From contig NC_043023.1 in NCBI RefSeq assembly GCF_006345805.1, positions 15,438,001 to 15,502,000 of the forward strand: a DNA stretch of 64,000 nt, written 5' to 3'. Numbering within the stretch: the stretch's first letter is position 1; every line of letters begins with the position of its first letter. A program made the translations under genes and the position numbers. The notes beneath the pieces are model-generated. The model searched no databases and was not told the DNA's origin. It saw nothing but the letters and a program-made list of their open reading frames with translations. This document shows, one piece after another, positions 4,489-62,822 of this stretch. Source of the stretch: Octopus sinensis. Lineage: Eukaryota.

Positions 4489-4571
4489 TCGACTAAAGGC
4501 ACTGCTCCAGCATGGCCACTGTCAAATGCCTGAAACATGTAAAATAGATAGGTTTCCCTATTTTCTTCCAT

Positions 4572-5581
4572 GTATCCATATTTATTATTGAAATATCACT
4601 TCCAGTATCGAACTGAAGTTTAATATTTATTCCAATCATTTTTACGTGTACAAATTTTCTCATTTGGGAGTCGAATTTTGTTTCTGTTGAGAGCCCTCTA
4701 GGATCTTTAATGGTTGATCTTCAGAATTTAGTTCTGCAGTGTGAATTTCTGTATATTCAGTTGTTGTAAGGCCTTTTACCAAAAGAAGACACCTGAACAT
4801 CTCAGGTGTAATTCTTTGAGTTTAAAAATATTCACACATTCTGTTAATTGTTCCTGCGTATGTGATAAAATCACCATCCTCTTTTTTCATTCTATTCCAA
4901 AACACCATCCAAGTGTTAGACAAGTTTTATCACCGAATATGTTAGACAGTAATTCTATTGTTTCTTTAAAACAAATTTCATTGAGTTTTTTGGGGTAATA
5001 TGAAATTAAAGTAATGTTCATACTCAGATGGGGCTCATTTATGTCATAATAACCTTACTTTTTCTGTGTCTGACCATGTCTTACAATCTTCCTTAAAAAT
5101 TACCTGCTGTAGTACAATGCAACAGTTATACCGTCCTCTGGGTTATAACTGGATTCATCGAGTCCAAAACGGCGTCTGGCAAAAATGTACTTCCCTTATT
5201 TTTGGACTTCTTTGAATAAAGCTCCAATAATTGTTGTTGTTGCTGCCTTTGTCGTTGATTTTGCAACAGTTTTAAAGAAGCTAATTAGTCTTCCATGATT
5301 TAACAATTTTGTATCACAAAAATTTGTTAACTGACCTGCAAGAGCTTCGAAACCCTCATCGCCAGATGTTGTAACATAATTGTTCCGTACAATAAATAAG
5401 ATAACCAGAAAATTGTAACAACAATCTAATGAACTAACAAATCTTTTACGAACCAACATTCAATATTCCTTAGGAAGTAAACCAAGCGACACCTTCCAAC
5501 TTCAGTTGACTCTGAACCGCAAACTCACTCAGATCGTTACTATTTATACTTTACTCGAGCCAGTCTACTCTCATCACAACA
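4572..5581 (-). mobile_element. Ty3/Gypsy relic: 5' LTR (5367-5581), PBS, degenerate gag, protease
   Basis: Reverse-complement copy of 13547-14555. Protease reads KLQFDTGSDISII. Confidence 0.8.
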
Positions 5582-6531
5582 GGTGCCATTCTAACCAGAT
5601 GCCCATCATAAATCCCTGCTTGGTGTCTGGTAAGAACAAGACCATGAAAACCTGCTCTACAGAATGATTTATCAAAAAATAAGTATGATGATAATCACTT
5701 GCATGGGTTGAGCGGGGATGTGCTTGAACCATAGGTAAAGTGGGGCATTAGGCTCTTGAAAAATATTTCCCACTCTACACCCAAAACTGTGACAAACAGC
5801 AATAAGCCTCCAGCTAGTGCCAGAATATGTGGGCAGTAGCACAAAGGGTGCAGATCCTGGGATCCCTGAGTGTGTCCAGCAGAGGATAACTGATCACGGC
5901 TGGGAACTGGAGTGTAATACATTTGTGTCAAAATAATATATCCTCAAGGAAACAGAGCAAATTAATATAATCAATATTGTTTGAATAAAAAACACAAATC
6001 GTAATTAGTGAGTTGATGCAAATGAGGAAAATGTGAAAAATGAATTTATTTTGTAAAAAGTAATACATTTGCTGTATTTTATTCAGCAGGACATCTGTTT
6101 TATCATTAATATTGTTATTGATCAATATGAATAAGTATATGTTTAGTTAAGGTAGATTATTGAGAGAATGATTTAGCACAGATTACACAGTCATAAGAAT
6201 CTTCTCCTGTATGAATATGTTTGTGTTTAGTTTATTATTTCTCTCTATGAAAGAATGACTTGTCACAGATGTCACAGTGATATGATTTCTCTCCTGTATG
6301 AATGTATTTGTGATGAGTTCAATATTGTTCCACAGAGAATGATTTACCTCAGGTATCACAGCAATAGAGTTTCTCTCCTGTATGAATACGTTTATAAGTA
6401 TATACAGCATATTCACAATAGAATGATTTGCTGCAGACATCACAGTCACATAGTTTCTCTCCAGTATGAGCAGACTTGTAATTAATTAAATATTTTCTTA
6501 AACGGAATAATTTACTGCAGATACCACAGTG

Positions 6532-7740
<1,209 letters not shown>

Positions 7741-10451: not shown

Positions 10452-12596
10452 ATGAATAGTCTGGAAATGTTAAAAGAAAGAGAAAAGTTATCAAACCAAT
10501 CTGATATCTGTAAAAAGACTTATTCTAATAAGGGAAATCTCACTGTTCACAAATTCATTCATGCAGGGGGGAAACAATATCATTGTGATATCTGTGGTAA
10601 ATCATTCTCTCAAAAAAGTCACCTTACTCATCACAAATACACTCATACTGGAGAGAAACCATATCAGTGTGATATCTGTGGTAAATCATTCTCTCAAAGC
10701 ACTGTCCTTTCTTATCACAAATCTGTTCATACTGGAGAGAAACCATATCACTGTGATATCTGTGGTAAATCATTCTCTACAAAATATAACCTTACTAAAC
10801 ACAAATACATTCATACAAGAGAGAAACCAAATCAATGTCATATTTGCGGTAAATCATTCTCTCATAGAAGTTCCCTTGATTCTCACACACATATTCATAC
10901 AGGAGAAAAACCACATCAGTGTGATGTTTGTGGTAAATCATTCTCTCAAAAAAGTAGCCTTAATTCTCACAAATACATTCATACAGGTGAGAAACCATAT
11001 CAGTGTGATATCTGTGATAAATCCTTTTCATTAAAAAGTTATTTAACTACTCACAAATCCATTCATACAGGAGAGAAACCATATCGATGTGATATTTGTG
11101 GTAAATCATTCACTCAGAAATATAGCCTCACTCATCACAAATACACTCATACTGGAGAGAAACCATATCAATGTGATATTTGTGGTAAATCATTCTCTCA
11201 AAAGACTGCCCTTTCTTATCACAAAGTCGTTCATACTAGAGAGAAACCATATCACTGTGATATTTGTGGTAAATCATTCCCTAAAAAATATAACCTTACT
11301 AAACACAAATCCATACATACAGGAGAGAAACCATATCACTGTGATATTTGTGGTAAATCATTCCCTAAAAAATATAACCTTACTAAACACAAATCCATAC
11401 ATACAGGAGAGAAACCATATCACTGTGATATTTGTGGTAAATCATTCACTCAGAAATGTAACCTTAATTCTCACAAATATATTCACACAGGAGAGAAACC
11501 ATATCAGCGTGATATCTGTAATAAATCCTTTTCATTAAAAAGTTATTTAACCACTCACAAACTAACACATACAGGTGAGAAGCCATATCACTGCGATATT
11601 TGTGGTAAATCATTCTGTTATATGAGTAGCCTTGATTCTCACAAACACATACATACAGGAGAGAAACCATATCACTGTGATATTTGTGGTAAATCATTCT
11701 GTTATATGAGTAGCCTTGATTCTCACAAACACATACATACAGGAGAGAAACCATATCACTGTGATATTTGTGGTAAATCATTCTGTTATATGAGTAGCCT
11801 TGATTCTCACAAACACATTCATACAGGAGAGAAACCATATCACTGTGATATTTGTGGTAAATCATTCTGTTATATGAGTAGCCTTGATTCTCACAAACAC
11901 ATACATACAGGAGAGAAACCATATCACTGCGATATTTGTGGTAAATCATTCTGTTATATGAGTAGCCTTGATTCTCACAAACACATACATACAGGAGAGA
12001 AACCATATCACTGTGATATTTGTGGTAAATCATTCTGTTATATGAGTACCCTTGATTCTCACAAACACATTCACACAGGACAGAAACCACATCACTGCGA
12101 TATTTGTGGTAAATCATTCTGTTATACGAGTACCCTTGATTCTCACAAACACATTCACACAGGACAGAAACCACATCACTGCGATATTTGTGGTAAATCA
12201 TTCTGTTATACGAGTACCCTTGATTCTCACAAACACATTCACACAGGACAGAAACCACATCACTGCGATATTTGTGGTAAATCATTCTGTTATACGAGTA
12301 CCCTTGATTCTCACAAACACATTCACACAGGACAGAAACCACATCACTGCGATATTTGTGGTAAATCATTCTGTTATACGAGTACCCTTGATTCTCACAA
12401 ACACATTCATACAGGAGAGAAACCACATCACTGCGATATTTGTGGTAAATCATTCTCTCAAAAAAGTTACCTTGATTCTCACAAATCAGTTCATACAGGT
12501 GAGAAACCATATCGGTGCTATATCTGTGGTAAATCATTCTCTCAGAAGAGGTATTTAAATAGACACAAATGCATTAATACAGGGGACAAACCATAG
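10452..12596 (+). CDS. A-type C2H2 zinc-finger protein, 714 aa, 25 fingers (3 degenerate)
   Basis: Uninterrupted ORF of 28-aa CX2CX12HX3H units with TGEKP linkers. Acceptor ttcAG at 10115. Confidence 0.95.
11580..12420 (+). repeat. Ten near-identical 84-bp finger repeats
   Basis: 5x CYMSSLDSH, 1x CYMSTLDSH, 4x CYTSTLDSH. Confidence 0.95.
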
Positions 12597-13546
12597 CACT
12601 GTAGTATCTGCAGTAAATTATTCCGTTTAAGAAAATATTTAATTAATTACAAGTCTGCTCATACTGGAGAGAAACTATGTGACTGTGATGTCTGCAGCAA
12701 ATCATTCTCTCAGGAATATGCTGTATATACTTATAAACGTATTCATACAGGAGAGAAACTCTATTGGTGTGATATCTGCGGTAAATCATTCTCTGTGGAA
12801 CAATATTGAACTCATCACAAATACATTCATACAGGAGAGAAATCATATCACTGTGACATCTGGGACAAGTCATTCTTTCATAGAGAGAAATAATAAACTA
12901 AACACAAACATATTCATACAGGAGAAGATTCTTATGACTGTGTAATCTGTGCTAAATCATTCTCTCAATAATCTACCTTAACTAAATATATACTTATTCA
13001 TATTGATCAATAACAATATCAATGATAAAACAGATGTCCTGCTGAATAAAATACAGCAAATGTATTACTTTTTACAAAATAAATTTATTTTTCACATTTT
13101 CCTCATTTGCATCAACTCACTAATTACGATTTGTGTTTTTTATTCAAACAATATTGATTATATTAATTTGCTCTGTTTTCTTGAGGATATATTATTTTGA
13201 CACAAATGTATTACACTCCAGTTCCCAGCCATGATCAGTTATCCTCTGCTGGACACACTCAGGGATCCCAGGATCTGCACCCTTTGTGCTACTGCCCACA
13301 TATTCTGGCACTAGCTGGAGGCTTATTGCTGTTTGTTACAGTTTTGGGTGTAGAGAGGGAAATATTTTTCAAGAGCCTAATGCCCCACTCTACCTATGGT
13401 TCAAGCACATCCCCGCTCAACCCATGCAAGTGATTATCATCATACTTATTTTTTGCTAAATCCTTCTGTAGAACAGGTTTTCATGGTCTTGTTCTTACCA
13501 GACACCAAGCAGGGATTTATGATGGGCATCTGGTTAGAATGGCACC
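12597..13546 (+). other. A-type 3' UTR: decayed finger repeats followed by a conserved AT-rich segment with AATAAA (~13045)
   Basis: Repeated at 5582-6531, 37059-37990, 51798-52748 and 55536-56485; a diverged homologue lies at ~62100-62480. Confidence 0.7.
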
Positions 13547-14555
13547 TGTTGTGATGAGAGTAGACTGGTCCGAGTAAAGTATAAATAGTAACAATCTGAG
13601 TGGGTTTGCGGTTCAGAGTCAAGTGAAGTTGGAAGGTGTCGCTTGGTTTACTTCCTAAGGAATATTGAATGTTGGTTCGTAAAAGATTTGTTAGTTCATT
13701 AGATTGTTGTTACAATTTTCTGGTTATCTTATTTATTGTACGGAACAATTATGTTACAACATCTGGCGATGAGGGTTTCGAAGCTCTTGCAGGTCAGTTA
13801 ACAAATTTTTGTGATACAAAATTGTTAAATCATGGAAGACTAATTAGCTTCTTTAAAACTGTTGCAAAATCAACAACAAAGGCAGCAACAACAACAATTA
13901 TTGGGGCTTTATTCAAAGAAGTCCAAAAATGAGGGAAGTACATTTTTGCCAGACGCCGTTTTGGACTCGATGAATCCAGTTATAACCCAGAGGACGGTAT
14001 AACTGTTGCATTGTACTACAGCAGGTAATTTTTAAGGAAGATTGTAAGACATGGTCAGACACTGAAAAAGTAAGGTTATTATGACATAAATGAGCCCCAT
14101 CTGAGTATGAACATTATTTTAATTTCACATTACCCAAAAAAACTCAATGAAATTTGTTTTAAAGAAACAATAGAATTACTGTCTAACATATTCGGTGATA
14201 AAACTTCTCTAACACTTGGATGGTGTTTTGGAATATAATGAAAAAAGAGGATGGTGATTTTATCACATACGCAGGAACAATTAACAGAAAGTGTGAATAT
14301 TTTTAAACTCAAAGAATTTACACCTGAGATGTTCAGGTGTCTTCTTTTGGTAAAAGGCCTTACAACAACTGAATATACAGAAATTCACACTGCAGAACTA
14401 AATTCTGAAGATCAACCATTAAAGATCCTAGAGGGCTCTCAACAGAAACAAAATTCGACTCCCAAATGTGGAAATTTGTACACGTAAAAATGATTGGAAT
14501 ACATATTAAACTTCAGTTCGATACTGGATGTGATATTTCAATAATAAAAATGGAT
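13547..14555 (+). mobile_element. Ty3/Gypsy LTR retrotransposon relic: LTR 13547-13761, PBS, gag, aspartic protease
   Basis: LTR TGTTGTGA...TTACAACA with TATAAATA, followed by the PBS TGGCGATGAG. Broken frames read SSYNPEDGIT...IFKEDCKTWSDTEKVRLL...ICFKETIELLSNIFGDKTSL...DFITYAGTIN...FKLKEFTPEMFRCLLLVKGL (K02A2.6-like gag), then KLQFDTGCDISII (protease DTG). Confidence 0.85.
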
Positions 14556-14556
14556 A

Positions 14557-14921
14557 CATGTTTCAGGCATTTGACAATGGCCATGCTGGAGCAGTGCCTT
14601 TAGTCGAGCAAATAAACCCAGGACTTGTTCTTTGTAAGCCTAGTACTTATTCTATTTTTCTCTTTTGCCAAACTGCTATGTGACGGGGGTGTAAACACAC
14701 CAGCATCGGTTGTCAAGCAATGTTTGGGGGATAAACATATACACACACACACATTATACGATGGGCTTCTTTCAGTTTCCGTCTACCAAATCCACTTACA
14801 AGGCTTTGGTCGGCCCGAGGCTATAGTAGAAGACACTTGTCCAAAGTGCTACACAGCGAGACTGAACCTGGGACCATGTGGTTGGTAAGCAAGCTACTTA
14901 CCACACAGCCACTCCTACGCC
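14557..14921 (-). mobile_element. tRNA-head SINE, family S2
   Basis: Minus strand starts ggcgtaggagTGGCTGTGTGGtaag...GGTTCAGTC (A/B boxes) and contains an (AC/AT)n tract. Copies at 27343, 35403, 50762, 57925 and 58320. Confidence 0.8.
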
Positions 14922-16469: not shown

Positions 16470-16990
16470 GTTCAGTTTTATTTCTTCAATTTCAAGCAAT
16501 CAATGACGTCTATTGAGGTGAAAACATTCTGTGCCGTATGAACATGTCCCTCTTTTAAGAAACAGATTGGGTTTATTTACATTTGTGAAAAAAAAAATAC
16601 CCTTCTCTCACCCCTAACCCTAAAAGAGATTGAAATGCAATAGATTGATACTAGGGTCATAATGGGTGACCATTTCATATGACACCGCTAGAAAAACTGC
16701 CGTTCAAACCGAAAAGATCCAATACATTTCTAAATATCTCAGAGATTTATGCAGTAGTGGTACAATAAAGATACCCTTCCCCCACCCCTAACCCTAACTC
16801 TAACCAAACCTAACCCTAAAATAGATTGAAATGCAAAGATCGATACTAGGGTTATAATTATTGGTGACATTTTCATTTGACACCATTAGAAAAAAATCCC
16901 ATTTTCTGTAAAAATGATGTTTTATAAACACATTCTACCAGTATACGAAGTTTAAAAGTGTTTAGTTAACTAGAAATTGTGTTGACAGAT
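16470..16990. mobile_element. Nested and truncated GGATC-TIR MITE pieces with CCCTAA tracts
   Basis: TIR end ctgccgttcaaaccgaaaagatcc at ~16720; shares terminal sequence with 60564-61347. Confidence 0.7.
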
Positions 16991-17775: not shown

Positions 17776-18427
17776 AGATCTTTTCCTTTTGAACGGCAGT
17801 TTTCAACACAATTTTTAGTTAACTAAACACTTTTAAACTTCGTATACTGGTAGAATGTGTCAAAAAACATTTTTTTCTCTTGGCTTTCTTGAGAAAATTG
17901 TAATTTGTAAGTTTAATGTAGTTTAATTTTTAGAATTTTAACCAATCAATGGCCTCTATTGAGCTAAAATCATTTGCTGCGTCCAAAACTGAGACAACAT
18001 CACCCTAACCCTAAATTCTAGCCTTTCCTTTTTTTTTTTCTCAAATGTTAAATTAATTTAAGGATAACAATTACGAAAAAAAAAAACTCAACAAAAACAA
18101 AATGAATAATTTTAGACACACGCGAAACGATTAAATTAATTTAACAATTAAGAAAAAAAAAATGAAAGGCACAAATTTAAGGTTAGGGTTAGTGACAGGA
18201 TGTTGCCTCAGTTTTAGACGCAGCAAATAATTTTAGCTCAATAGAGGGCATAGGATTGGTTAAAATTCGAAAAATTAAACTACATTAAACGAACAAATTA
18301 CAATTTTCTCAAGAAAGCCAAAAGAAAAAAATGTTTATTTTGATACATTCTACCAGTATACGAAGTTTTAAAGTGTTTAGTTAACTAGAAATTGTGTTGA
18401 AAACTGCCGTTCAAAAGGAAAAGATTC
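17776..18427. mobile_element. GGATC-TIR MITE abutting the ZNF 3' end; no TSD
   Basis: ~250-bp TIRs (agatcttttcc...ggaaaagattc). The flanks are not direct repeats. Confidence 0.85.
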
Positions 18428-25356: not shown

Positions 25357-26416
25357 AGATCTTTTCCTTTTGAAAGGCAGTTTTTAACAATATTTCTAGT
25401 TAACCAAACACTTTAAATCTTCGTATACTGGTAGAATGTATCAAAATAAAACATATTTTTCTCTTGGCTTTCCTGAGTAAATTGTAATTTGTAAGTTTAA
25501 CGTAGTTTATTTTTTGAATTTTAAACAATCCTATGCCCTCTATTGAGCTAAAATTATTTGCTGCGTCTAAAACTGAGACAACATCACCCTAACCCTAACC
25601 CTAAATTTTAGCCTTTTGTTTTTTTCTTTTATTGTTATCCTTAAATTAATTTAAGGATAACAATTAAGAAAAAAAAACGAAAAGCTAAAATGAAAGCAAA
25701 AACTCAACCAATACAAAACGGTTAGGGAAGGGTATCTTCTTTTCTTCGCAAATGTAAATAAACCCAATAAACATATTCATGCAGCACGGTATGATTTGAC
25801 TCCAAATGGACGTATTTGATTGGTAAAAATTGCCGAGATGCTCGATTTTAAAGTGGAAATGGGTTGACCGTAATCAGAATTCAATGTTGCATCGATAAAC
25901 CAAAATTGAAAACGATCTAAGCAAAATTAATGATGGGGAGGGATCATTTTGCAAATGAGAAAGACTATACCAAAACATTTTAAATCTAGTAGCTATATCA
26001 TCCGACTCTTTTGCTGCAGAACAAGGATCTTTTCTGTTTGACCGGCAGTCTTTTAAAATAATTTCCATGTAACTAAACACTTTTAAACTTCGTATACTGG
26101 TAGAATGTCTTTATAAAACATCTTTTTCTCTTGGCTTTATTGAGAAAATTCTATAGTTTGTAAGATATTTGTTGTTTTTTATTTCTGCAATTTCAACCAA
26201 TCAATGACGTCTATTGAGGTGAAAACATTCTGTGCCGTATGAATATGTCCCTCGTTTAAGAAACAGATTGGGTTTATTTACATTTGTGAAAAAAAAAAGA
26301 TACCCCTAACCCTAAAACAGATTGAAATGCAATAGATTGATACTAGGGCCATAACTATGGGTGACAATTTCATATGATACCGCTAGAAAAAACTGCCGTT
26401 CAAACGGAAAAGATCC
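25357..26416. mobile_element. GGATC-TIR MITE fragments (25357-~25720 one-ended; 26025-26416 two-ended without TSD)
   Basis: Terminal agatcttttcc, and ggatcttttc...gaaaagatcc. Confidence 0.75.
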
Positions 26417-27776: not shown

Positions 27777-28997
27777 CTAGCAGAGATACCCGGCGTTGCT
27801 CAGTATTAAAATGTCATAGTTTGTGTATATATATATTACAGTTATGTTGAAACAGGTGATATAGGAAAGTGCAGCATTGATGACAAAACATTTGTGGAGT
27901 AAAAGATGGACTAAGCGACTTGTCATTTGTCCGAGTATTCCTTGCCCTAACCAGTCGTGAAAATTGGGGGTGGAGTGTTTGTGGTTTTTGAATGCCCCGA
28001 AAAGCTGTCAGTGGATATGTTTACCTTTGTGGCAGTTGGTCCTGCATCTAACATGACCCATTGTCTGAAGTTTTGACACCTCCTGTGGGTTTATTGTCCT
28101 ACATCACTCATGAAGTAAATTTTGAGGACCTGTAACACATAAAAGCACCAACCGACTGTGGCCATTTGCCAGCCTCCTCTGGCCGGTGGCACATAAAAAG
28201 CACCCACTATACTCATGGAGTGGTTGGCATTAGGAAGGGCATCCAGCTGTAGAAACACTGCCAGATCAGACTGGAGCCTGGTGCAGCCTCGTGGTTTCCC
28301 AGATCCCGGTCAAACCGTCCAACCCATGCTAGCATGGAAAACAGACGTTAAACGATGATGAAGATGTGGTTGGTTGTTCATCTGTGGGTAACAGGGAACC
28401 ATTGAGGTGACAGACTTGCCCTTCGACTGTAAATGTCAGTGTAAATCCATGTTCAACTATCTCCTTATATGCACCAAACAATGTCATTTGTGATGCAGGA
28501 TTGTCTGATATTGTTCAGGAAATCCTTTGACTGGATGGAAGTACCTTCCAGAAGAGGTTGAGAAGGAGCTGGTAGTGCTGGCAATATTACCTTACTGCCT
28601 GGGCATTGCATGCCATTAGTTTCATTTGGAAATTTTAAAGCTTTACAGAAACAACGATTTGAGTTTAGCACACTAATTTGGCCAAAATTATCATTTTCAT
28701 AAAAATGGGATGGATTATATCTGAAAGCAGCTCCAGGATTTGTGAAGAACGCATTTATACATAGTCTGTTTGTGAGAGCTATTCTATTGGACCACTGTCT
28801 AATCATTAAAATGTTTTAATGGCTAAGCATTAAATGCTGCAGCATGTGTTTGCTGATCTTGCAAAAGTCTCAACTCCCTTCTGTATTGAGACTCCATCTG
28901 ATGTGCTGCGGCTTGCCTTTGCTCATCTTGAGAAAGTCCCATCTTGCTTCTGTCTTAAGAAGCAAGATGGAAATATTGTCCAATGATATGTAATTTA
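27777..28997 (-). mobile_element. Helitron relic in intron 1
   Basis: Minus-strand 3' end ...gagcaacgccgggtatctctgCTAG|t. 28465-28806 encodes AAFRYNP...CKALKFPNETNGMQCPGSKVILPALPAP...QSKDFLNNIR, resembling the Helitron Rep N-terminal region. Confidence 0.7.
28140..28362 (+). mobile_element. SINE family S3 with RTE-like (GAT)n tail
   Basis: aagcacccactatactcatggagtggttggc...gttaaacgatgatga. Copies at 59280, 59715 and 62560. Confidence 0.75.
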
Positions 28998-31020: not shown

Positions 31021-32008
31021 AGATCTTTTCCTTTTGAACGGCAGTTTTCAACAAAATTTCTAGTTAACTAAACACTTTTAAACTTCGTATACTGGTAGAA
31101 TGTATCAAAATAAAACATTTTTTTCTCTTGGCTTTCTTGAGTAAATTGTAATTTGTTTGTTTAACGTAGTTTAATTTTTAGAATTTTAACTAATCAATGG
31201 CCTCTATTGAGCTAAAATCATTTGCTGCGTCTAAAACTGAGGCAACATCCTGTCACTAACCCTAACCTTAAATTTTAACCTTTTGTTTTTTTTTTCTTAA
31301 TTGTTAAATTAATTTAATTGTTACGTGTGTGTCTAAAATTATTAGTTTTGTTTTTGTTGAGTTTTTGCTTTCGTTTTAGCCTTTTGTTTTTTTTTTCTTA
31401 ATTGTTAAATTAATTTAATTGTTACGTGTGTGTCTAAAATTATTAGTTTTGTTTTTGTTGAGTTTTTGCTTTCGTTTTAGCCTTTTGTTTTTTTTTTTCT
31501 TAAATGTTAAATTAATTTAATTGTTACGTGTGTGTCTAAAATTATTCGCCTCGTTTTTGTTGAGTTTTTGCTTTCGTTTTAGCCTTTTGTTTTTTTTTTC
31601 TTAATTGTGAAATTAATTTAATTGTTACGTGTGTGTCTAAAATTATTAGTTTTGTTTTTGTTGAGTTTTTGCTTTTGTTTTAGCCTTTCATTTCTTTTAT
31701 CTTAATTGTTATCCTTAAATTAATTTAACAATTGAGAAAAAAAAACCGAAAGGCTAAAATTTAGGGTTAGGGTTAGGGTGATGTTGTCTCAGTTTTAGAC
31801 GCAGCAAATGATTTTAGCTGAATAGAGGCCATTGATTGGTTAAAATTCGAAAAATTCAACTACGTTAAACTTACAAATTGCAATTTTCTAAAGAAAGCCA
31901 AGAGAAAAAAATGTTTTATTTTCACACATTCTACCAGTATACGAAGTTTAAAAGTGTTTAGTTGACTAGAAATTGTGTTGAAAACTGCCGTTCAAAAGAA
32001 AAAGATCA
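31021..32008. mobile_element. GGATC-TIR MITE with an internal ~105-bp minisatellite x4 (31285-31700)
   Basis: ~260-bp TIRs. The spacer repeat has a single copy in the paralogues at 17776 and 45663. Confidence 0.85.
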
Positions 32009-39703: not shown

Positions 39704-40322
39704 TATTGTTCTGTAGTATACAGACAGAAAATATATTTCTCCCTTCTTCTTTATATATATCTTCTACAGCAAATCTGATCTTAAATATCTGAAAATGATA
39801 CAAACACCTTTCCAGATTTTCTCACATTCAAACACAATGCAAAATACTTTTGTAAATATTCCTGGCAATGAGGAAACAAATGTTGCTATTAATTCAGAAG
39901 AAATATTTCACCGTTATTCACCATAGATATATTATACAAACAGAATTATTATCTATTATTTATAACGGCTGACATTCGTTTTCAAAACATGATCAATATT
40001 CATGATGTATCTCACGTAAAACTCCTTTATACGAGTATCTGAAATGACACAGAAACAGTAGAAGATATAGGAAAGACTTAAAAAGCAAAGGTTTAACAAT
40101 AAAAATTATAACTACATTTTCATAATGATAAACTGTTGCCCGAATAAATTACACTTTAAAATGATACTCATGACACAAGACATTACTTTCGTCTATTATG
40201 ACCTGAGTCATAAATCTAATACTTTCTCTAGTTTAGTTTCAATGCACCCAAACAAACAAAAGGAAAAGCAGTGTAAATAACGGACAGAGTCAAAACTATT
40301 GAAAAGGTTGCAAGACGCAAAG

Positions 40323-41896
40323 AAAATTTTAGGAAAAAAGGAAATAAGTAAGAAATAAGAAATAACTGCAAAATTTTACCGATGAGTGTGTTAAATTATA
40401 AGGCACAAAAAGAAAATGACTCTCCCCAGACGCAACAGAATATGCTTCAATACACGAATTCATATAAAGAACCTTGCAAACCAAATCAAAAAACGAAATA
40501 GAATTAATATCTGTTTCTTTATTACCCACAAGGGGCGAAACACGGACGGGACAAACAAGGACAGACAAACGGATTAAGTCGATCACATTGACCCCAGTGC
40601 GTAACTGGTACTTAATTTATCGACCCCGAAAGGATGAAAGGCAAAGTCGACCTTGGCGGAATTTGAACTCAGAACGTAACGGCGGACGAAATTAATATCG
40701 ATGTCAGACTAGCAACATTGAATACTTTCATTATTGTCTGGAGTTTCGAATTTTCCAGGTTCTTCTGCTTTCACTAAAAATAAAATATGTACGATATCTT
40801 ACCTGTTATGATAAATAAATCAGTGCTAAAAGTCAATTAACGCAAACCACACCAAAAAAGCCATTCAGCGGGAAACGTAATTTAAAGAAAGCTCAAAAAA
40901 TAGACATGGAATGTAGACGAAACGAACTGATATCCGGATGTTGTATATATCGTAATACTATAAATTTATCGGATGCTAAAACTAAGTTGGTAAATTCTCA
41001 ATGTTTTTTATTGGTATAATTACTTTTCAAAAATGTGAGTTATGAGGAAAAATCCAAATGATGACAAAACATACAAAACTGACTGCTTATTTTCATATCT
41101 ATTGGTACTTTTCCACTATCCTGTTACCGAACCCTTAAATTACAGGGACGGAAAGAAACCAACAGGACTTATCAAAGAGGGACGGAGGGAAAACTGGAAG
41201 ACTCGTGTGTGTTATTTCTACCTGTATTCGAGAACCATTGTTACTTTGTTTACATTCCTGTAACTTCGTTGTATATGTTACGATATATACAACATCCGGA
41301 TGTTCAGTTGTTTCGTCGACATTCCATGTCTATTTTTTGAGCTTTCTTTAAATTACGTTTCCCGCTGAATGGCTTTTTTGGTGTGGTTTGCGTTAATTGA
41401 CTTTTAGCACTGATTTATTTATCATAACAGGTAAGATATCGTACATATTTTATTTTTATTGAAAGCAGAAGAACCTGGAAAATTCGAAACTCCAGACAAT
41501 AATGAAAGTATTCAATGTTGCTAGTCTGACATCGATATTAATTTCGTCCGCCGTTACGTTCTGGGTTCAAATTCCGCCGAGGTCGACTTTGCCTTTCATC
41601 CTTTCGGGGTCGATAAATTAAGTACCAGTTACGCACTGGGTCAATGTGATCGACTTAATCCGTTTGTCTGTTCTTGTTTGTTTCGTCCGTGTTTCGCCCC
41701 TTGTGGGTAATAAAGAAACAGGTATTAATTCTATTTGGTTTGCAAGGTTCTTTATATGAATTCGTGTATTGAAGCATATTCTGTTGTGTCTGGGGAGAGT
41801 CATTTTCTTTTTGTGCCTTATAATTTAACACACTCATCGGTAAAATTTTGCAGTTATTTCTTATTTCTTACTTATTTACTTTTTTCCTAAAATTTT
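40323..41896. repeat. 1.57-kb palindrome: arms 40323-40955 and 41278-41896, ~320-bp spacer
   Basis: Each arm contains exon 1, the donor, intron start and an S1 SINE with TSD aattaatatc. Confidence 0.95.
40802..41432. promoter_or_regulatory. Bidirectional promoter with two outward-facing exon-1 copies (donors at 40802 minus, 41431 plus)
   Basis: CAG|GTAAGA on both strands, an ETS-like CCGGATGT and the conserved exon-1 motif in both arms. Confidence 0.6.
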
Positions 41897-42670
41897 CGTT
41901 GTAGGATCGACTACTTACGACTAGCTAGCGCGTACCGGGTCCAGTCTTCGCTAGTAGTACCTATGCTTTTGTGTTTTATTTACTTTGTTTTAAAAAGAAA
42001 GGCGATCTTACGGTATAAGTACCGGTGTACTTCCGGAAGTACTGGATACATTTCAAAAAGGTGTTTTTTTTATATGGGGGGGGGGTTCTGTTATCTTTAG
42101 AAATGTAAACAAAGACACGTGTGTACCTATACCGAAGGATCGCCATTCTGTCCTGTCTCTACTCTTCATACGTCAATTCACAGAACACTTTCTCTAAATT
42201 AGTGACCACACCTTCAACATATGTGAGTGCAGTTTGTTTTTATTATTAATAAAGTTACGAGAGGAAAAGTCATGATGGGTTGGTTCACTAAATTGTAGTT
42301 TATGTTTATGTTTGATCTGTTACAGAAGTTGTAACAATCATGAACATTACCTAATTTCATTAATAATAGATCTGCTCAGTCAGGGATAACCTAGGGTTAA
42401 ACATTAGTCACTCATCATATTATTGTCCAATATCCTATAGTTGAACCCTTTATTGTTTAAACTGGCCATATCAGGCCCAGATATTCTGCATGTTTTATAT
42501 TCAAACTGGCGGTATCTGGGCCCTCACACCTAACCTACATTGACATTCTAGAAATAAACAATCACATCATTGAAACCTCAAAGCCATAAGATATTGCATG
42601 ATTAATTCAAAACAATTTGAGTGAAAAAGAATTACATTTAACAGAATAATCTGAACACTAAAGGGATAAT

Positions 42671-45662: not shown

Positions 45663-46326
45663 GGATCTTTTCCTCTTGAACGGCAGTTTTCAACAAAATT
45701 TCTAGTTAACTAAACACTTTTAAACTTCGTATACTGGTAGAATGTATCAAAATAAAACATTTTTTTCTCTTGGCTTTCTTGAGAAAATTGTAATTTGTAA
45801 GTTTAACGTAGTTTAATTTTTCAAACTTTAACCAATCCTATACCCTCTATTGAGCTAAAATTATTTGCTGCGTCTAAAACTGAGGCAACATCCTGTCACT
45901 AACCCTAACCCTAAATTTTAGCCTTTCGTTTTTTTTTTTTCTTAATTGTTACGCGTGTGTCTAAAATTATTGGTTTTGTTTTTGTTGAGTTTTTGCTTTT
46001 GTTTTAGCCTTTCGTTTTTTTTTCTTAATTGTTATCCATAAATTAATTTAACAATTGAGAAAAAAAATAAAAACGAAAGGCTAAAATTTAGGGTTAGGGT
46101 TAGTCTCAGTTTTAGACACAGCAAATGATTTTAGCTCAATAGAGGTCATAGGATTGGTTAAAATTCGAAAAATTAAACTACATTAAACTTACAAATTACA
46201 ATTGTCTCAAGAAAGCCAAGAGAAAGAAACGTTTTCTTTTCACACATTCTACCAGTATACAAAGTTTAAAAGTGTTTAATTAACTAGAAATTGTGTTGAA
46301 AACTGCCGTTCAAAAGAAAAAGATCA
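45663..46326. mobile_element. GGATC-TIR MITE at the ZNF 3' end; no TSD
   Basis: Same flanks as 31021-32008. Confidence 0.85.
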
Positions 46327-48723: not shown

Positions 48724-49297
48724 GAATCTTTTCCTTTTGATAGACAGAATTAAACCCAATTTCTAGTTAACTAAACAACTTGAAACTTCGTATACTGGTA
48801 GAATGTGTCAAAATAAAACATTATTTTCACTTGGGTTTTGTGATGAATTTGTAATTGGTAAGTTTAACGTAGTTTAATTCTTTGAATTTTAACCAATGAA
48901 TCGCCAGTATTTGAGCTCAAATCATTTGCTGCGTCTAAAAACTCAGACAACTTCCTGTTACTGTTTACGTAGACAGTGCACACACAATGTTTGTTTTTGT
49001 CACATTCGTTCCCTTCTCTCACTCAGTCCATCTCTCTCTCTCTCCCTGTATGTCTTTCTTATTCCATCTCTCTATTGTTTTTCTCAGTCAAAGGTCTCTT
49101 TCTCTCTTTTAATCCATTTTTTACTAAATGTTTTGGATCTTTTCCTTTTGATAGACAGAATTCAAATTACAAATTTATCAAAAAACCCAAGTGAAAATAA
49201 TGTTTTCTTTTGACACATTCTACCAGTATATGAAGTTTCAAGTTGTTTAGTTAACTAGAAATTGGGTTGAATTCTGTCTATCAAAAGGAAAAGATCC
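48724..49297. mobile_element. Complete GGATC-TIR MITE (574 bp) with 8-bp TSD CTTATTTC; probably Merlin superfamily
   Basis: TSD at 48716-48723 and 49298-49305; empty site at ~33985. GG...CC termini with an 8-bp TSD fit Merlin best, although hAT and P also make 8-bp TSDs. Confidence 0.85.
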
Positions 49298-52748: not shown

Positions 52749-52890
52749 TGTTGTGATGAGAGTTACCATGTCCCCTTGTGAGAGATAGACTGGTTCGAGT
52801 AAAGTATAAATAGTAACGATCTGAGTGGGTTTGCGGTTCAGAGTCAAGTGAAGTCGGAAGGTGTCGCTTGGTTTACTTCCTAAGGAATAT
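52749..52890 (+). mobile_element. Truncated Gypsy LTR (U3 with TATAAATA at 52805) fused to intron 1 of the next gene
   Basis: LTR sequence stops at cttcctaaggaatat and continues as ttttatttttagtgaaagc (intron 1, compare 41445). Confidence 0.8.
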
Positions 52891-52984
52891 TTTATTTTTA
52901 GTGAAAGCAGAAGAACCTGGAAAATTCGAAACTCCAGACAATAATGAAAGTATTCAATGTTGCTAGTCTGACATCGATATTAAT

Positions 52985-53152
52985 TTCGTCCGCCGTTACG
53001 TTCTGGGTTCAAATTCCGCCGAGGTCGACTTTGCCTTTCACCCTTCGGAGTCGATAAATTAAGTACCAGTTACGCACTGGGGTCAATGTAATCAACTTAA
53101 TCCGTTTGTTTGTCTCGTCCGTGTTTCGCCCCTTGTGGGTAATAAAGAAACA
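52985..53152 (+). mobile_element. SINE S1 in intron 1
   Basis: Same insertion as 41540-41720. Confidence 0.8.
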
Positions 53153-53652
53153 GATATTAATTCTATTTCGTTTTTGGATTTGGTTAGCAAGATTCGTGTA
53201 TTGAAGCATATTCTGTTGTTTCTGGGGAGAGTCGAAAATGTAGTTATAATTTTTATTGTTAAACCTTTGCTTTTTAAGTCTTTCCTATATCTTCTACTGT
53301 TTCTGTGTCATTTCAGATACTCGTATAAAGGAGTTTTACGTGAGATACATCATGAATATTGATCATGTTTTGAAAACGAATGTCAGCCGTTATAAATAAT
53401 AGATAATAACTCTGTTTATATAATATATCTATGGTGAATAATGGTGAAATATTTCTTCTGAATTAATAGCAACATTTGTTTTCCTCATTGCCAGGAATAT
53501 TTACAAAAGTATTTCACACTCAGTTTGAATGTGAGAAAATCTGGAAAGGTGTTTGTATCATTTTCAGATATTCAAGATCAGATTTGTTGTAGAAGATATA
53601 TATAAAGAAGAAGGGGAAAATATATTTTCTGTCTGTATACTATAGAACAATA

Positions 53653-55314
53653 ATGAATAGTCTGGAGATGTTAAAAGAAAGAGAAAAGTTATCAGACCAA
53701 TGTGATATCTGTAAAAAGACTTTTTCTAATAAGGGAAATCTCACTGTTCACAAATGTATTGATCCAGGTGGAAGGAAATATTACTGTGATATTTGTGGTA
53801 AATCATTCTCTCAAAAAAGTCACCTTACTCATCACAACTACACTCATACTGGAGAGAAACCACATCACTGTGATATCTGTGGTAAATCATTCTCTAAAAA
53901 ATATAACCTTACTAAACACAAATCCATTCATACAGGAGAGAAACCATATCAATGTTGTATTTGCGGTAAATCATTCTCTCATAGAAGTTCCCTTGATTCT
54001 CACAAACACATTCATACAGGAGAGAAACCACATCACTGTGATATCTGTGGTAAATCATTCTCTAAAAAATATAACCTTACTAAACACAAATACATTCATA
54101 CAAGAGAGAAACCATATCAATGTCGTATTTGCGGTAAATCATTCTCTCATAGAAGTTCCCTTGATTCTCACAAACACATTCATACAGGAGAGAAACCACA
54201 TCAGTGTGATGTTTGTGGTAAATCATTCTCTCAAAAAAGTAGCCTTAATTCTCACAAATACATTCATACAGGTGAGAAACCGTATCAGTGTGATATCTGC
54301 GATAAATCCTTTTCATTAAAAAGTTATTTAACTACTCACAAATCCATTCATACAGGAGAGAAACCATATCGATGTGATATTTGTGGTAAATCATTCACTC
54401 AGAAATGTAGCCTCACTCATCACAAATACACTCATACTGGAGAGAAACCATATCAATGTGATATTTGTGGTAAATCATTCTCTCAAAAATCTAACCTTAC
54501 TACTCACAAATCAGTTCATACAGATGAGAAACCATATCAGTGTGATATCTGTGATAAATCCTTTTCATCAAAAAGTCATTTAACTACTCACAAACTCCCT
54601 CATGCTCATGAGAGGCCATATCCCTGTGATATTTGTGGTAAATCATTCACTCAAAGGATAGGCCTTACTTATCACAAATACACTCATACAGGAAAGAAAC
54701 CATATAAATGTGATATTTGTGGTAAATCATTCTCTCAAAAAGGTCACCTTACTTATCACAAATCAGTTCATACAGGTGAGAAACCATATCAGTGTGATAT
54801 CTGTGATAAATCTTTTTCATCAAAAAGTCATTTAACTACTCACAAACTTACACATACACGTGAGAAGCCACATCACTGCGATATTTGTGGTAAATCATTC
54901 TCTCAAAAATGTAACCTTACTACTCACAAATCAGTTCATACAGATGAGAAACCATATCAGTGTGATATTTGTGATAAATCCTTTTCATCAAAAAGTTATT
55001 TAACTACTCACGAACTCACTCATGCTCATGAGAGGCTATATCCCTGTGATATTTGTGGTAAATCATTCACTCAAAGGAGAGGCCTTACTTATCACAAATA
55101 CACTCATACAGGAGAGAAACCATATCACTGCAATATATGTGGAAAATCATTCTCTCATAGGAGTGGCCTTACTTATCACAAATTAGTTCATAAAGGAGAG
55201 AAACCATATCACTGTGATATCTGTGGTGTAGCATTCTCTGAAAAAAGTCGCCTTGCTTATCACAAATACACACATGCAGGAGACAATCCATATCCCTGTG
55301 ATATATCTGTGTAA
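53653..55314 (+). CDS. A-type C2H2 ZNF, 553 aa, 19 fingers
   Basis: Intact ORF; acceptor at 53316. Ends CDISV* through an older frameshift shared with the 38-kb gene. Confidence 0.93.
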   Translation: MNSLEMLKEREKLSDQCDICKKTFSNKGNLTVHKCIDPGGRKYYCDICGKSFSQKSHLTHHNYTHTGEKPHHCDICGKSFSKKYNLTKHKSIHTGEKPYQCCICGKSFSHRSSLDSHKHIHTGEKPHHCDICGKSFSKKYNLTKHKYIHTREKPYQCRICGKSFSHRSSLDSHKHIHTGEKPHQCDVCGKSFSQKSSLNSHKYIHTGEKPYQCDICDKSFSLKSYLTTHKSIHTGEKPYRCDICGKSFTQKCSLTHHKYTHTGEKPYQCDICGKSFSQKSNLTTHKSVHTDEKPYQCDICDKSFSSKSHLTTHKLPHAHERPYPCDICGKSFTQRIGLTYHKYTHTGKKPYKCDICGKSFSQKGHLTYHKSVHTGEKPYQCDICDKSFSSKSHLTTHKLTHTREKPHHCDICGKSFSQKCNLTTHKSVHTDEKPYQCDICDKSFSSKSYLTTHELTHAHERLYPCDICGKSFTQRRGLTYHKYTHTGEKPYHCNICGKSFSHRSGLTYHKLVHKGEKPYHCDICGVAFSEKSRLAYHKYTHAGDNPYPCDISV

Positions 55315-59270: not shown

Positions 59271-60374
59271 AATGGTTCATCATCATCATTTAACATCCAC
59301 TTTCCATACTGGCATGGGTTGGACGATTTTGACTGAGGGCTGGTGAGCCAGATGGCTGCACTAGGCTCCAATCTGATCTGGCAGAGTTTCTACAGCTGGG
59401 TGCCCTTCCTAATGCCAACCACTCCGAGAGTGTAGCGGGGCTGTCCAAGAATTTGGACCTGGAGATCTCCATTTCCACTGACTTCAAGGGCCACCTCCCA
59501 GTGGTGTCGGGCATCAATGGAAAGCGCCCTCGACTGCAACAAGACGACCACAGATTTTTTATTTCCCTTACCTGTCTTGTTGCCTAACAACAAGAGTGTA
59601 GTGGGTCTTTTTCAAGTGTGACTGGCACGGAAGGGGGCGCAGCCAGATGGCACTGGCATAGATAAGGCTCAAATGGTAGTTCTTTTGTGCCAACTCATTA
59701 TCTCACATTCACAGCATCATCATCGTTTAGTGTCCGTTTTGGATGGTTCGACTGTGGTCTGGGAAGCCAGAAGGCTGCACCAGGCCCAGTCTGATCTGGC
59801 AGTGTTTCTACATCTGGATGCCCTTTTCTCCATGCCGAGCAGGGCCATCTCCCTGACAGGATCTGTCTTTGGTCTTTGCTAAATTTACTGTATGGTTTTT
59901 CAATCCAGATCTTGCTTCCATACCTGAAATTTGTTCTCTAATTGTGGTAGGGATTCAGCAATAAGAACAAGGTCATCAGCTTGGAAGAGATCCCAAGGGC
60001 AGCCAATCTTAAATTCCTTCCTAATGCCAACCACTCCGTGAGTGTAGTGGGTGCATTTTACATGCCACCAGCACAGGTGTCAGGCAAGGCTGGCAACGGC
60101 TATGATCGGTTGGTGCTTTTTACCAGCAAGGAAGCCAGTCAAGGTGGTGCTGGCATCAGTCATGTTCAGATGGTGCTTTTTACTTGCCACCGGCACAGGT
60201 ATCACAACTACAATTTCCATTTGATTTTTTGATGTTAATGTACTTGACTCAATAGGTCTCCTCATATATCAATGTAAGTTCCATGGATCAAGGTGTAGAA
60301 TTGTATCAAGTAGAAGCACCAGCAATGCTATCTTCCTGGTGAGGCAAAAGCAGAAGTACTTGGTCAAAGATATA

Positions 60375-60563
60375 TCTTTGCATTTGGATTTTGTTGACAT
60401 GGAAAAAGCTTTTGACAGAGTCCCCTACTCCATTATTTGGTGAGAAATAGAGAAGCTAGGGAGAGATGAGTGGTTGGTAAGATTGGCTGCCCTTGGGATC
60501 TCTTCCAAGCTGATGACCTTGTTATTATTACTGAATCCCTACCAAAATTAGAGAACAAATTTC
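60375..60563 (+). mobile_element. RTE LINE reverse-transcriptase fragments (also 59830-60010 minus, 61855-62090 plus)
   Basis: FVDMEKAFDRVP, CPWDLFQADDL..AESLPKLENKFQVWKQ, NLAKTK and RWPCS motifs. Confidence 0.8.
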
Positions 60564-61347
60564 GGATCTTTTCCTTTTGAACGGTGCGTTTCAACACAAT
60601 TTCTAGTTAACTAAACACTTTTAAACTTCGTATACTATTAGAATGTGTTTATAAAACATCATTTTTTCTTGGCTTTATTGAGAAAATTCTATAGTTTGTA
60701 AGATATTTCGTCTGAAAATTCGAGTATTTTGGCAATTTTAACTGATCGCTGAGTCATTTAGGTAAATAACATTCTGTGCATAATGAATATGTCCCTCCTT
60801 TAAGAAACAGATTGGGTTTATTTACATTTGTGAAGAAAAAAAGATACCATTCCCCCACCCCGAACCCTAATCTAAAAGAGATTGAAATGCAATAGATCGA
60901 TACTAGGGCCATAATTATGGATGACAATTTCATACGACACCGCTACAGAAAGTGGGATTTTTTTCTAGCGGTGTCAAATGAAAATGTCACCCATAATTAC
61001 GGCCCTAGTATCGATCTATTGCATTTCAATCTATTTTAGAGTTAGAGTTAGGGGAGTGGGAAGGGTATCTTTTTTTCTTCACAAATGTAAATAAACCCAA
61101 TCTGTTTCTTAAAGGAGGGACATATTCATACAGCACGGAATATTTACCTAAATAGACTCCAGCGATTGGTTAAAATTGCCAAAATACTCGAATTTTCAGA
61201 CGAAATATCTTACAAACTATAGAATTTTCTCAATAAAGCCAAGAAAAAATGATGTTTTATAAACACATTCTTCCAGTATACAAAGTTTAAAAGTGTTTAG
61301 TTAACTAGAAATTATGTTACAAAGTGCCGTTCAAAAGGAAAAGATCC
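60564..61347. mobile_element. Self-palindromic GGATC-TIR MITE (784 bp) with inverted rather than direct flanks
   Basis: caaatttc|GGATC...GATCC|gaaatttg. Confidence 0.9.
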
Positions 61348-62559
61348 GAAATTTGTTCTCTAATTTTGGTAGGGATTCAGCAATAATAACAAGATCATCA
61401 GCTTGGAAGAGATCCCAAGGGCAGCCAATCTTACCAACCACTCATCTCTCCCTAGCTTCTCTATTTCTCACCAAAGTCCAAATGCAAAGATATATCTTTG
61501 ACCAAGTACTTCTGCTTTTGCCTCACCAGGAAGATAGCATTGCTGGTGCTTCTACTTGATACAATTCTACACCTTGATCCATGGAACTTACATTTATATA
61601 TGAGGAGACCTATTGAGTCAAGTACATTAACATCAAAAAATCAAATGGAAATTGTAGTTGTGATACCTGTGCCGGTGGCAAGTAAAAAGCACCATCCGAA
61701 CATGACTGATGCCAGCACCACCTTGACTGGCTTCCATGCCGGTAAAAAGCACCAACCGATCATAGCCGTTGCCAGCCTTGCCTGGCACCTGTGCTGGTGG
61801 CATGTAAAATGCACCCACTACACTTACGGAGTGGTTGGCATTAGGAAGGAATTTAAGATTGGCTGCCCTTGGGATCTCTTCCAAGCTGATGACCTTCTTA
61901 TTGCTGAATCCCTACCAAAATTAGAGAACAAATTTCAGGTTTGGAAGCAAGATCTGGATTGAAAAACCATACAGTAAATTTAGCAAAGACCAAAGACAGA
62001 GATGGCCCTGCTCGGCATGTAGAAAAGATGTCAGGAGAAACTCCATGTAGTGTACCCAGTACAAGATATGGACACATATTGTTCATTTGATTATAGGCTG
62101 GAGATTGTGGGATAGCCTAAGCATGTCCAGCAGAGAACAACTGATCATCGTTGGGAACTGGAATGTGATACAATGGTGTCGGAATAATATATCCACAAGA
62201 AAACAGCAAATTAATGTAATTAAAATTGCTTGATTGAAAACCACACACATCATAATTAATGAGTTGATGCAAATGAGGAAAATGTAAAAAATTTATTTGT
62301 CTCAAAAAAAGTAATACAATTGCTGTATTTTATTCCCCATTTTATCACTGGTATTGTTATTGATCAATATGAATAAATACAGGTTTAGTTAAATTACGTT
62401 AAGAGAATGATTTTGCACAGATAACACAGCAATATGTCTTCTCTCCTGTATGAATGCATTTAAAATTAGTTAAACAACATAATCCTAAGAGAATGATTTA
62501 CTACAGATATCAAAACCAAAAATCAAAGTCATAATCGATCAACATCAATGGAATTTGTA

Positions 62560-62822
62560 GCTGTGATACCAAGGCCGGTGGCACATAAGTGAACCATCCG
62601 AACGTGGCCGTTTGCCAGTTCCTTCTGGCACCTTTGCCGGTGGCACGTAAAAAGTACCCACTACAATCACGGAGTGGTTGGCGTTAAGAAGGGCATCCAG
62701 CTGTAGAAACACTGCCAGATCAGACTGGAGCCTGGTGCAGCCTTCTGGCTTCCCACACCCCAGTTGAACCGTCCAACCCATGCTAGCATGGAAAGTGGAC
62801 GCTAAACGATGATGATGATGAT
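62560..62822 (+). mobile_element. SINE S3 in the decayed ZNF tail
   Basis: Ends in (gat)n at ~62820. Confidence 0.75.

Follow-up and report, generated by a model that had tools for sequence, protein, structure and literature searches.

How does a transposable element come to lie at the exact centre of mirrored host DNA? The question is raised by a locus of Octopus sinensis, in a stretch of 64,000 nucleotides of contig NC_043023.1 (assembly GCF_006345805.1, positions 15,438,001 to 15,502,000; hereafter the window, in which all positions are counted). Here a miniature inverted-repeat transposable element (MITE) occupies the axis of a 2.2-kb palindrome, whose arms are composed of pieces of an RTE retrotransposon and of a short interspersed nuclear element (SINE). 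The anatomy of the arms, a step in age at the end of the MITE and a SINE split at the left edge are directly observed. The answer that we favour, with rather more confidence than doubt, is that the locus is the fossil of a hairpin-primed fold-back repair of a DNA break at a foldback-type MITE.

Structure of the palindrome

The palindrome spans 59823-62030 and consists of a left arm (59823-60563), a complete foldback-type MITE of 784 bp (60564-61347, no strand assigned) bounded by GGATCTTTTCC...GGAAAAGATCC, and a right arm (61348-62030). An earlier note on this DNA had placed a palindrome with mirrored flanks exactly here, and both its coordinates and its junction letters, caaatttc|GGATC...GATCC|gaaatttg, agree with the present analysis; outward from the two junctions the host sequence is the same in mirror orientation, for about 740 bp on the left and 683 bp on the right. 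The MITE has perfect termini of 21 bp (GGATCTTTTCCTTTTGAACGG), its arms pair nearly as far as the middle, and it is predicted to fold as a single hairpin (-363 kcal/mol, z = -58.6). The self-complementary fold described in the earlier note thus holds, with a loop of 10 nt (60952-60961, no strand assigned) instead of the ~20 nt proposed. This loop contains the midpoint of the flanks, (60563+61348)/2 = 60955.5, so the entire 2.2-kb palindrome shares it as its axis of symmetry; the earlier note had likewise put the MITE at the axis.

Aligned over 59862-60563, the two arms show 642 matches, 11 mismatches (11/653 = 1.68%; six transitions and five transversions) and three indels. The indels measure about 11 bp (59851-59861), 3 bp (59966-59968) and 46 bp (60389-60434), and none of them lies inside a homopolymer run. 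These differences bear on the possibility of an assembly or library artefact, namely a fold-back chimeric read. Palindromes able to form hairpins are classic sites of in-vitro snap-back chimeras and the structure is known from one assembly; nevertheless, 11 substitutions in a 6:5 ratio of transitions to transversions and three non-homopolymer indels separate the arms, and the two arms of the MITE are themselves genuinely different and old. Moreover, derived substitutions are present on left and right arms alike, which argues that the duplication is old and genuine. An artefact is thus very improbable.

Polarised with RTE homologues, all three indels are deletions of the right arm, located at 61476 (46 bp), 61911-61912 (3 bp) and 62000-62001 (11 bp). 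Their occurrence on a single arm is not significant (p ~0.25); one-sided deletions would be in keeping with error-prone repair synthesis, were the right arm the copy.

The 2.2-kb unit could also be a dispersed composite transposon, that is a MITE with captured flanks, and not the product of a local rearrangement, as foldback-type elements can have long, complex arms. This is the least probable of the explanations considered here. Indeed, within the window the arm sequences recur only as pieces of SINE, and no second copy of the unit was found either there or in 102 kb from four other octopus loci, retrieved through homologues of reverse transcriptase (RT) and zinc-finger proteins (O. vulgaris, O. 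bimaculoides and GCA_006345805.1 of O. sinensis), apart from generic SINE and RTE similarity. No target-site duplication (TSD) surrounds 59823/62030 and the outside flanks are collinear with the inside, the SINE across 59826-60015 and the RTE across 62030. Because the sequence on both sides is collinear with the interior of the palindrome, an origin in situ is indicated.

Another order of events would have the MITE inserting at the exact centre of a pre-existing palindrome lacking any spacer, for example by cruciform targeting. This accounts for the exact axial position, and the lack of a TSD is weak evidence against it, most copies of the family in the window being without a clear one. Still, an axis-centred 8-bp TSD (tttcgaaa on each side) is absent, insertion at the axis to the nucleotide has a prior of about 1/1400, and a 1.4-kb palindrome with zero spacer could neither arise in any plausible way nor be expected to stay stable; we regard this order as very unlikely.

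Relative age of the MITE and of its flanks

The divergence between the two arms changes abruptly at the end of the MITE. The flanks differ by 1.68%, whereas the arms of the element differ at 33 of 389 positions (8.5%; Fisher test of flank versus whole MITE arm, p = 2.5e-7). Within the element the terminal 21 bp are identical (0/21), positions 22-80 carry ten mismatches in 59 (17%; flank versus this segment, p = 1.8e-5), and positions 81-180 diverge by 1.0%, with one mismatch in a 100-bp stretch. In addition, each MITE arm has private departures from the family consensus. Since divergence in the MITE is far above that of the flanks and each arm has changes of its own, both MITE arms predate the mirroring of the flanks. 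It follows that only the flank was copied, together with no more than 21 bp of the MITE, and that copying began within 21 bp of its terminus.

A replication U-turn at the centre of the MITE was also considered and rejected, because it would leave the MITE arms as alike as the flanks (8.5% versus 1.68% observed). The mismatch cluster at positions 22-80 corresponds to 60585-60639 and 61272-61326, where both arms depart from the family consensus.

The split SINE and the outer limits of the palindrome

Directly beyond the left arm is the 3' half of a SINE (59712-59825, minus strand), with its 5' end (aagggcatcc...) adjoining the palindrome; it was assigned by alignment to the full SINE copies at 62541-62820, 28135-28366 and 59277-59439. 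A SINE 5' half is found inside the arm (60016-60228, minus strand) and ends with ...attaggaagg, where the outer half starts. The two are separated by 190 bp, a reverse-complement RTE fragment (59826-60015, minus strand; EFKIGCPWDLFQADDL ... WPCSA.RK), which forms the outer part of the left arm and has an uninterrupted MITE target site. Deleting this insert joins the halves into a full SINE with a 4-bp AAGG overlap, and the composite aligns end to end with the full copies. The insert has 3-nt microhomology at both junctions, one of them being 59823-59825 (ctt), common to the outer SINE half and the RTE fragment. The breakpoints of the two halves agree to within -1 to +4 nt, in the same orientation, while the chance that an unrelated truncated SINE would match in position and orientation is estimated at about 1% (6 of ~280 positions, x 1/2). 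The halves belong to a single SINE, which a 190-bp inverted RTE fragment interrupts.

It follows that the outer 190 bp of each arm derive from an older inverted duplication of a segment of the RTE. That older event would have inserted an inverted RTE copy in a SINE some 0.5 kb away from the source sequence; equivalently, it can be read as an inversion of the intervening segment with duplication of 190 bp. Thus, the outer limits of the palindrome were most likely set by this older event, not by the point at which the later copying stopped. Twin priming of an RTE insertion, or template switching of the RT, was rejected as the source of the SINE-RTE junction, as it leaves the presence of the other half of the SINE beside the left arm unexplained.

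In Drosophila, a staggered-break model explains inverted duplications at the breakpoints of inversions or insertions, and this class offers a candidate likeness for the older 190-bp inverted RTE duplicate with its 0-4-bp SINE duplication. It covers the earlier step only and is here indistinguishable from a templated inverted insertion. Inversions and insertions with inverted duplications at their breakpoints in Drosophila are the topic of PMC3355041.

The split SINE is also relevant to the question of which arm is the copy. The earlier note had regarded the right arm as the donor, on the ground that only this arm runs on into contiguous RTE sequence. The continuation itself was borne out: the RTE beyond the palindrome (62031-62170, plus strand, 3' limit approximate) contains a Cys-rich, PHD-like motif (DVRRNSM*CTQYKIWTH...), the translation proceeds across the boundary as WPCSACRK|DVRRNS..CTQYKIWTH, and an O. 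vulgaris RTE copy (L003:1690-2130) is collinear across 62030. The left arm, however, is equally continuous through the SINE (59712-59825 plus 60016-60228), so that RTE sequence beyond 62030 is undiagnostic and the donor assignment falls. In its full form this explanation has the right arm copied outward as far as 62030, after which end joining linked the new strand with unrelated DNA at 59823. Native RTE past 62030 on the right side only and a mirrored flank beginning at the MITE end are in its favour; against it, the DNA left of 59823 is the missing half of the SINE, in the same orientation, a coincidence with a chance of about 1%, and the three deletions of the right arm are no mark of a template. 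On these grounds it appears unlikely.

Two mirror-image histories fit the product equally well, and neither arm can be called the donor. In the first the MITE occupied the RTE copy on the right, and it is the right arm that is newly made; in the second, which fits equally, it occupied the inverted copy on the left, and the new arm is the left one. A rule for such loci would be that native sequence beyond an arm does not mark this arm as the template if the limits were fixed by an older inverted repeat.

RTE copies and the target site of the MITE

Between the SINE 5' half and the MITE, the left arm contains an RTE reverse-transcriptase fragment (60229-60563, plus strand; ..STSNAIFLVRQ..FVDMEKAFDRVP..EWLVR, then KIGCPWDLFQADDL..KLENKF), which is stopped at caaatttc by the MITE. 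Its match to the RVT_1 profile is weak (E=0.04; 14.1 bits, the cut-off being 29.6), and its identity as an RT was assigned from the translation and from octopus RT homologues; indeed, the named best matches of the reverse-transcriptase pieces of the region are in Octopus vulgaris and O. bimaculoides. On the right arm the same components follow in mirror order: the copy of this fragment (61348-61636, minus strand), without 46 bp of the RT motif region, the copy of the SINE 5' half (61637-61849, plus strand) and a sense RTE fragment (61850-62030, plus strand), which makes up the outer arm and has the target site caaatttc|aggtttgg uninterrupted at 61936|61937. The corresponding outer fragment of the left arm retains the 11 bp and 3 bp that are missing from the right.

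The inner and outer RTE fragments of each arm overlap in an 86-bp block, which therefore occurs four times; past this block the outer fragment runs on downstream. In both outer copies the MITE target site is intact (caaatttc-aggt), as in an independent O. vulgaris RTE copy. The uninterrupted site caaatttc-aggtttgg reported in the earlier note is present at 61929-61944, and O. vulgaris has the same aaatttcaggtatggaagcaag. In the independent O. vulgaris copy the junctions A|B and Q|D, the latter between the outer right arm and the RTE beyond it, are RTE-native. A single complex event starting from an ancestor that already bore the MITE was rejected, as the RTE would have to be copied from one side of the MITE to the other with the MITE left out.

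About 177 bp (59 codons, EWLVR to FKIGCPW) are missing from within the inner RTE copy, seen as a gap of 59 aa in the protein alignment. The junction of this deletion is the TAAGA common to both sides (60478-60482; mirrored at 61429-61433), and the outer copies keep the native GGAATT (the E-F codons) upstream of TAAGA, which the inner ones are without. Only ~5 nt separate this junction from the edge of the older inverted repeat, a closeness that may point to slippage at the foot of a hairpin stem.

Proposed hairpin-primed fold-back repair

Fold-back repair is favoured because the mirrored flanks begin exactly at both termini of the MITE. From the products described above we infer a break, a hairpin intermediate and the following order of events. 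The starting point would be a minus-strand SINE head to head with a 5'-truncated plus-strand RTE; an inverted RTE copy of about 190 bp (EFKIG to CRK) in the SINE would then have produced a short inverted repeat with copies ~0.5 kb apart. In a second step the MITE would have inserted into one RTE copy at caaatttc|aggt, and the predicted state before the break is a MITE carrying an 8-bp duplication of CAAATTTC. In the third step a break may have occurred at or near one MITE end, either through a single-end cut by a transposase or through a nearby break followed by flap trimming. A single-end cut would be a natural cause of the break, but the mechanism does not depend on one.

After resection, the single-stranded DNA (ssDNA) of the MITE would snap back, and its perfectly paired 21-nt terminus would prime synthesis. 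The opposite flank would be copied in mirror over ~650 nt, through the inner RTE fragment, the SINE half and the older inverted RTE copy; the new strand, now identical to the RTE beyond the break, could anneal there and end the repair. In an equivalent variant, one MITE arm would invade the other arm on the sister chromatid. Under annealing the palindrome would end at the end of the older inverted copy, with the RTE native across 62030 and the SINE native across the left insert, and no end-joining scar would remain, because the new strand annealed to RTE sequence across the break. Judging from the sequence, the reaction most likely finished in this way, within the RTE segment, by means of the older inverted copy.

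Several points weigh against the proposed mechanism. The case rests on a single locus, and three separate events are needed within a small window of divergence. The inner and outer 86-bp copies differ at one fixed site only, so the order of events depends on few characters. The mismatch cluster at positions 22-80 of the MITE lies between very similar stretches (1.7% and 1.0%) and may partly reflect a factor other than age. Finally, templated fold-back insertions at breaks are usually much shorter, ~5-34 bp in PMC11724301.

The earlier note had proposed either fold-back repair primed by the terminal inverted repeat (TIR) of the MITE, which stands as the best explanation, or alternative (sister-chromatid) transposition, which does not. 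In the latter, the transposase of the MITE would act on element ends from sister chromatids, or in reversed orientation, and reinsertion nearby would generate an inverted duplication. In its favour, one breakpoint lies exactly at a transposon terminus and one copy of the family has an 8-bp TSD; nonetheless, no new 8-bp TSD is present at any breakpoint, the outer ones having only a 0-4 bp (AAGG) duplication and 3-nt microhomology. Furthermore, the older inverted RTE repeat already accounts for the outer limits, and the window yielded neither a transposase nor an autonomous element. Alternative transposition is thus quite unlikely, slightly more so than the right-donor history.

Relation to known systems

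Palindrome formation has been investigated in Tetrahymena, yeast and mammalian cells. In Saccharomyces cerevisiae, hairpin-primed foldback inversions at inverted repeats were described by Li, Putnam & Kolodner 2020 (PMC7467729) and Al-Zain et al. 2023 (PMC10622511). These inversions arise from ssDNA hairpins; hairpins with long stems can be used far from the break after processing of the 3' flap, and the commonest resolution involves an oppositely oriented repeat (ura3-52/URA3), through single-strand annealing (PMC7467729). The octopus locus resembles them in having a prior inverted repeat with a small loop at the axis, a duplicated flank that starts at the end of the stem and, in the proposed mechanism, a long-stem hairpin after flap trimming and a finish by annealing to an oppositely oriented repeat, as in the ura3-52/URA3 class. 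It differs in being a germline-fixed, interstitial event of 0.7 kb in an animal, whereas in yeast chromosome-arm rearrangements were selected in mutants; besides, the hairpin is here a 784-bp transposon and the event is known from sequence alone.

Short templated inverted insertions, known from an amplicon study in yeast (PMC11724301), are similarly interstitial and consist of a locally templated inverted copy made by fold-back at a break; they measure ~5-34 bp and use stems of a few bases, compared with ~650 nt and a stem of ~390 bp at the octopus locus. The germline fixation and the transposon hairpin set the octopus case apart from the yeast inversions, as already described.

The 'snap-back' insertions of polymerase theta form a comparable fold-back class. 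Alternative transposition of maize Ac/Ds, of the sister-chromatid or the reversed-ends type, requires two element ends that attack a new target, where an 8-bp TSD results. The likeness is a TIR element at the breakpoint of an inverted duplication, yet Ac/Ds products carry the 8-bp TSD of the new target, and the octopus locus shows neither such a TSD nor a second target. Drosophila has elements of the Foldback/Galileo type, and abortive gap repair gives inverted duplications inside P or Ds elements. Common traits are long-armed hairpin transposons with local rearrangement and hairpin-primed synthesis after excision-type breaks; those systems, however, mostly rearrange the element itself or give rise to large inversions by ectopic recombination, whereas in the octopus the host flank is mirrored around an intact element.

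The locus is thus most likely a clear natural case of a known class, a hairpin-primed foldback duplication with probable resolution via homology and a transposon as the hairpin, and calls for no new mechanism. Foldback inversions have been studied mainly in yeast mutants and cancer genomes. If the proposed history is true, the same pathway also shapes animal genomes at the sub-kilobase scale; the locus would preserve the hairpin that primed synthesis, the point at which synthesis started and the homology that completed the repair, and hairpin-type transposons would be natural seeds of such events.

The MITE family

The terminus GGATCTTTTCCTTTTGAACGG gave 17 matches in the window, against 0 expected, in a TIR search. 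Ten copies of the MITE are present, deriving from five independent insertion sites with different flanks; the longest open reading frame (ORF) wholly within the palindrome-borne element encodes 59 aa. Arm-to-arm identity in the other copies is 82-97%, which indicates that the hairpin is a property of the family and not a product of the palindrome event. Within the window, a clean 8-bp TSD (CTTATTTC) is confined to the reference copy at 48724-49297 (no strand assigned). The earlier note had taken an 8-bp direct TSD as normal for the family; this is correct for the reference copy, while at the other three independent insertions in the window (alpha, beta and the 26025 copy) no TSD was seen. The alpha insertion is found at 17776/31021/45663, with a truncated copy at 25357, and the beta insertion at 16480/33018/47321.

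In five copies (17776-18427, 31021-32008, 45663-46326, 48724-49297 and 60564-61347) the arms within a copy are 91-97% identical, while identity between copies is only 77-88%. This pattern of sequence identity suggests subfamilies with symmetric masters, or arm-to-arm conversion inside each element.

Searches with the terminus gave no match in a DNA scan of metagenome contigs and two in prokaryote genomes, on par with the ~1 chance match estimated (20-mer, 596 Gb). The 102 kb from the four other octopus loci contain no copy of the MITE family, though SINE and RTE copies are present.

Repeats of the SINE

The arm SINE halves (60016-60228 and 61637-61849) contain three copies of a ~60-nt unit with gccggtggcaNgtaaaaagcacca, and the full SINEs at 62541-62820 and 28135-28366 contain two. 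In 21 kb of O. vulgaris OX597814.1 the SINE of the window has five copies, the best of them 92% identical, and in 37.5 kb of O. bimaculoides CM046607.1 a single partial copy, with 81% identity; this contrast hints at an origin of the window in the O. vulgaris/sinensis lineage.

The zinc-finger cluster

The window is packed with C2H2 zinc-finger (ZNF) arrays of 84-bp period. A unit consisting of a ZNF array and two MITE insertions is present three times, once inverted, at ~16.5-20.7 kb (minus strand), ~29.7-33.5 kb (plus) and ~43.2-48.3 kb (plus). Being carried in this repeated unit, most MITE copies of the window spread by segmental duplication and not by transposition. An intact ORF for a C2H2 zinc-finger protein of 553 aa lies at 53653-55314, 4.5 kb left of the palindrome; in a collection of 5.8 billion proteins no identical or near-identical protein was found (best identity 59%) and no gene model for the locus was obtained, so that the sequenced species or assembly is apparently not annotated in that collection. 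Exact-protein look-ups with the ORFs spanning the palindrome junctions and with the nearest ZNF ORF returned no record.

The MITE had also been put forward, in the earlier note, as a candidate engine for the mirrored architecture of the cluster. None of the nine other copies, representing four other independent insertions, has mirrored flanks, and none of the large inverted blocks of the window (e.g. 4569-7557 versus 11568-14560) converges on a MITE. Apparent axes at ~25, 32 and 46.8 kb were rejected, as they are midpoints between the copies of the thrice-repeated unit and not centres on which arms converge. A broader form of the idea is that this foldback MITE family recurrently seeds mirror duplications of its flanks, for example through single-end cuts, giving loci able to form long hairpins with RTE/SINE arms, possible silencing RNAs and inverted ZNF arrangements; we consider it very doubtful. 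A hairpin locus that gives rise to silencing RNAs is Mu killer of maize.

A second small palindrome is present at 40318-41901, with arms at 40318-40962 and 41272-41901 that are 95-98% complementary; it has a non-palindromic spacer of 310-322 bp and no GGATCTTTTCC MITE. Because the other MITEs are unmirrored, the inverted blocks miss the MITEs and this second palindrome is MITE-free, the engine idea is unsupported, and the mechanism that produced the palindrome at 59823-62030 does not explain the mirrored layout of the cluster. Part of an arm of the second palindrome (40418-40788) recurs in inverted orientation at 52887-53233.

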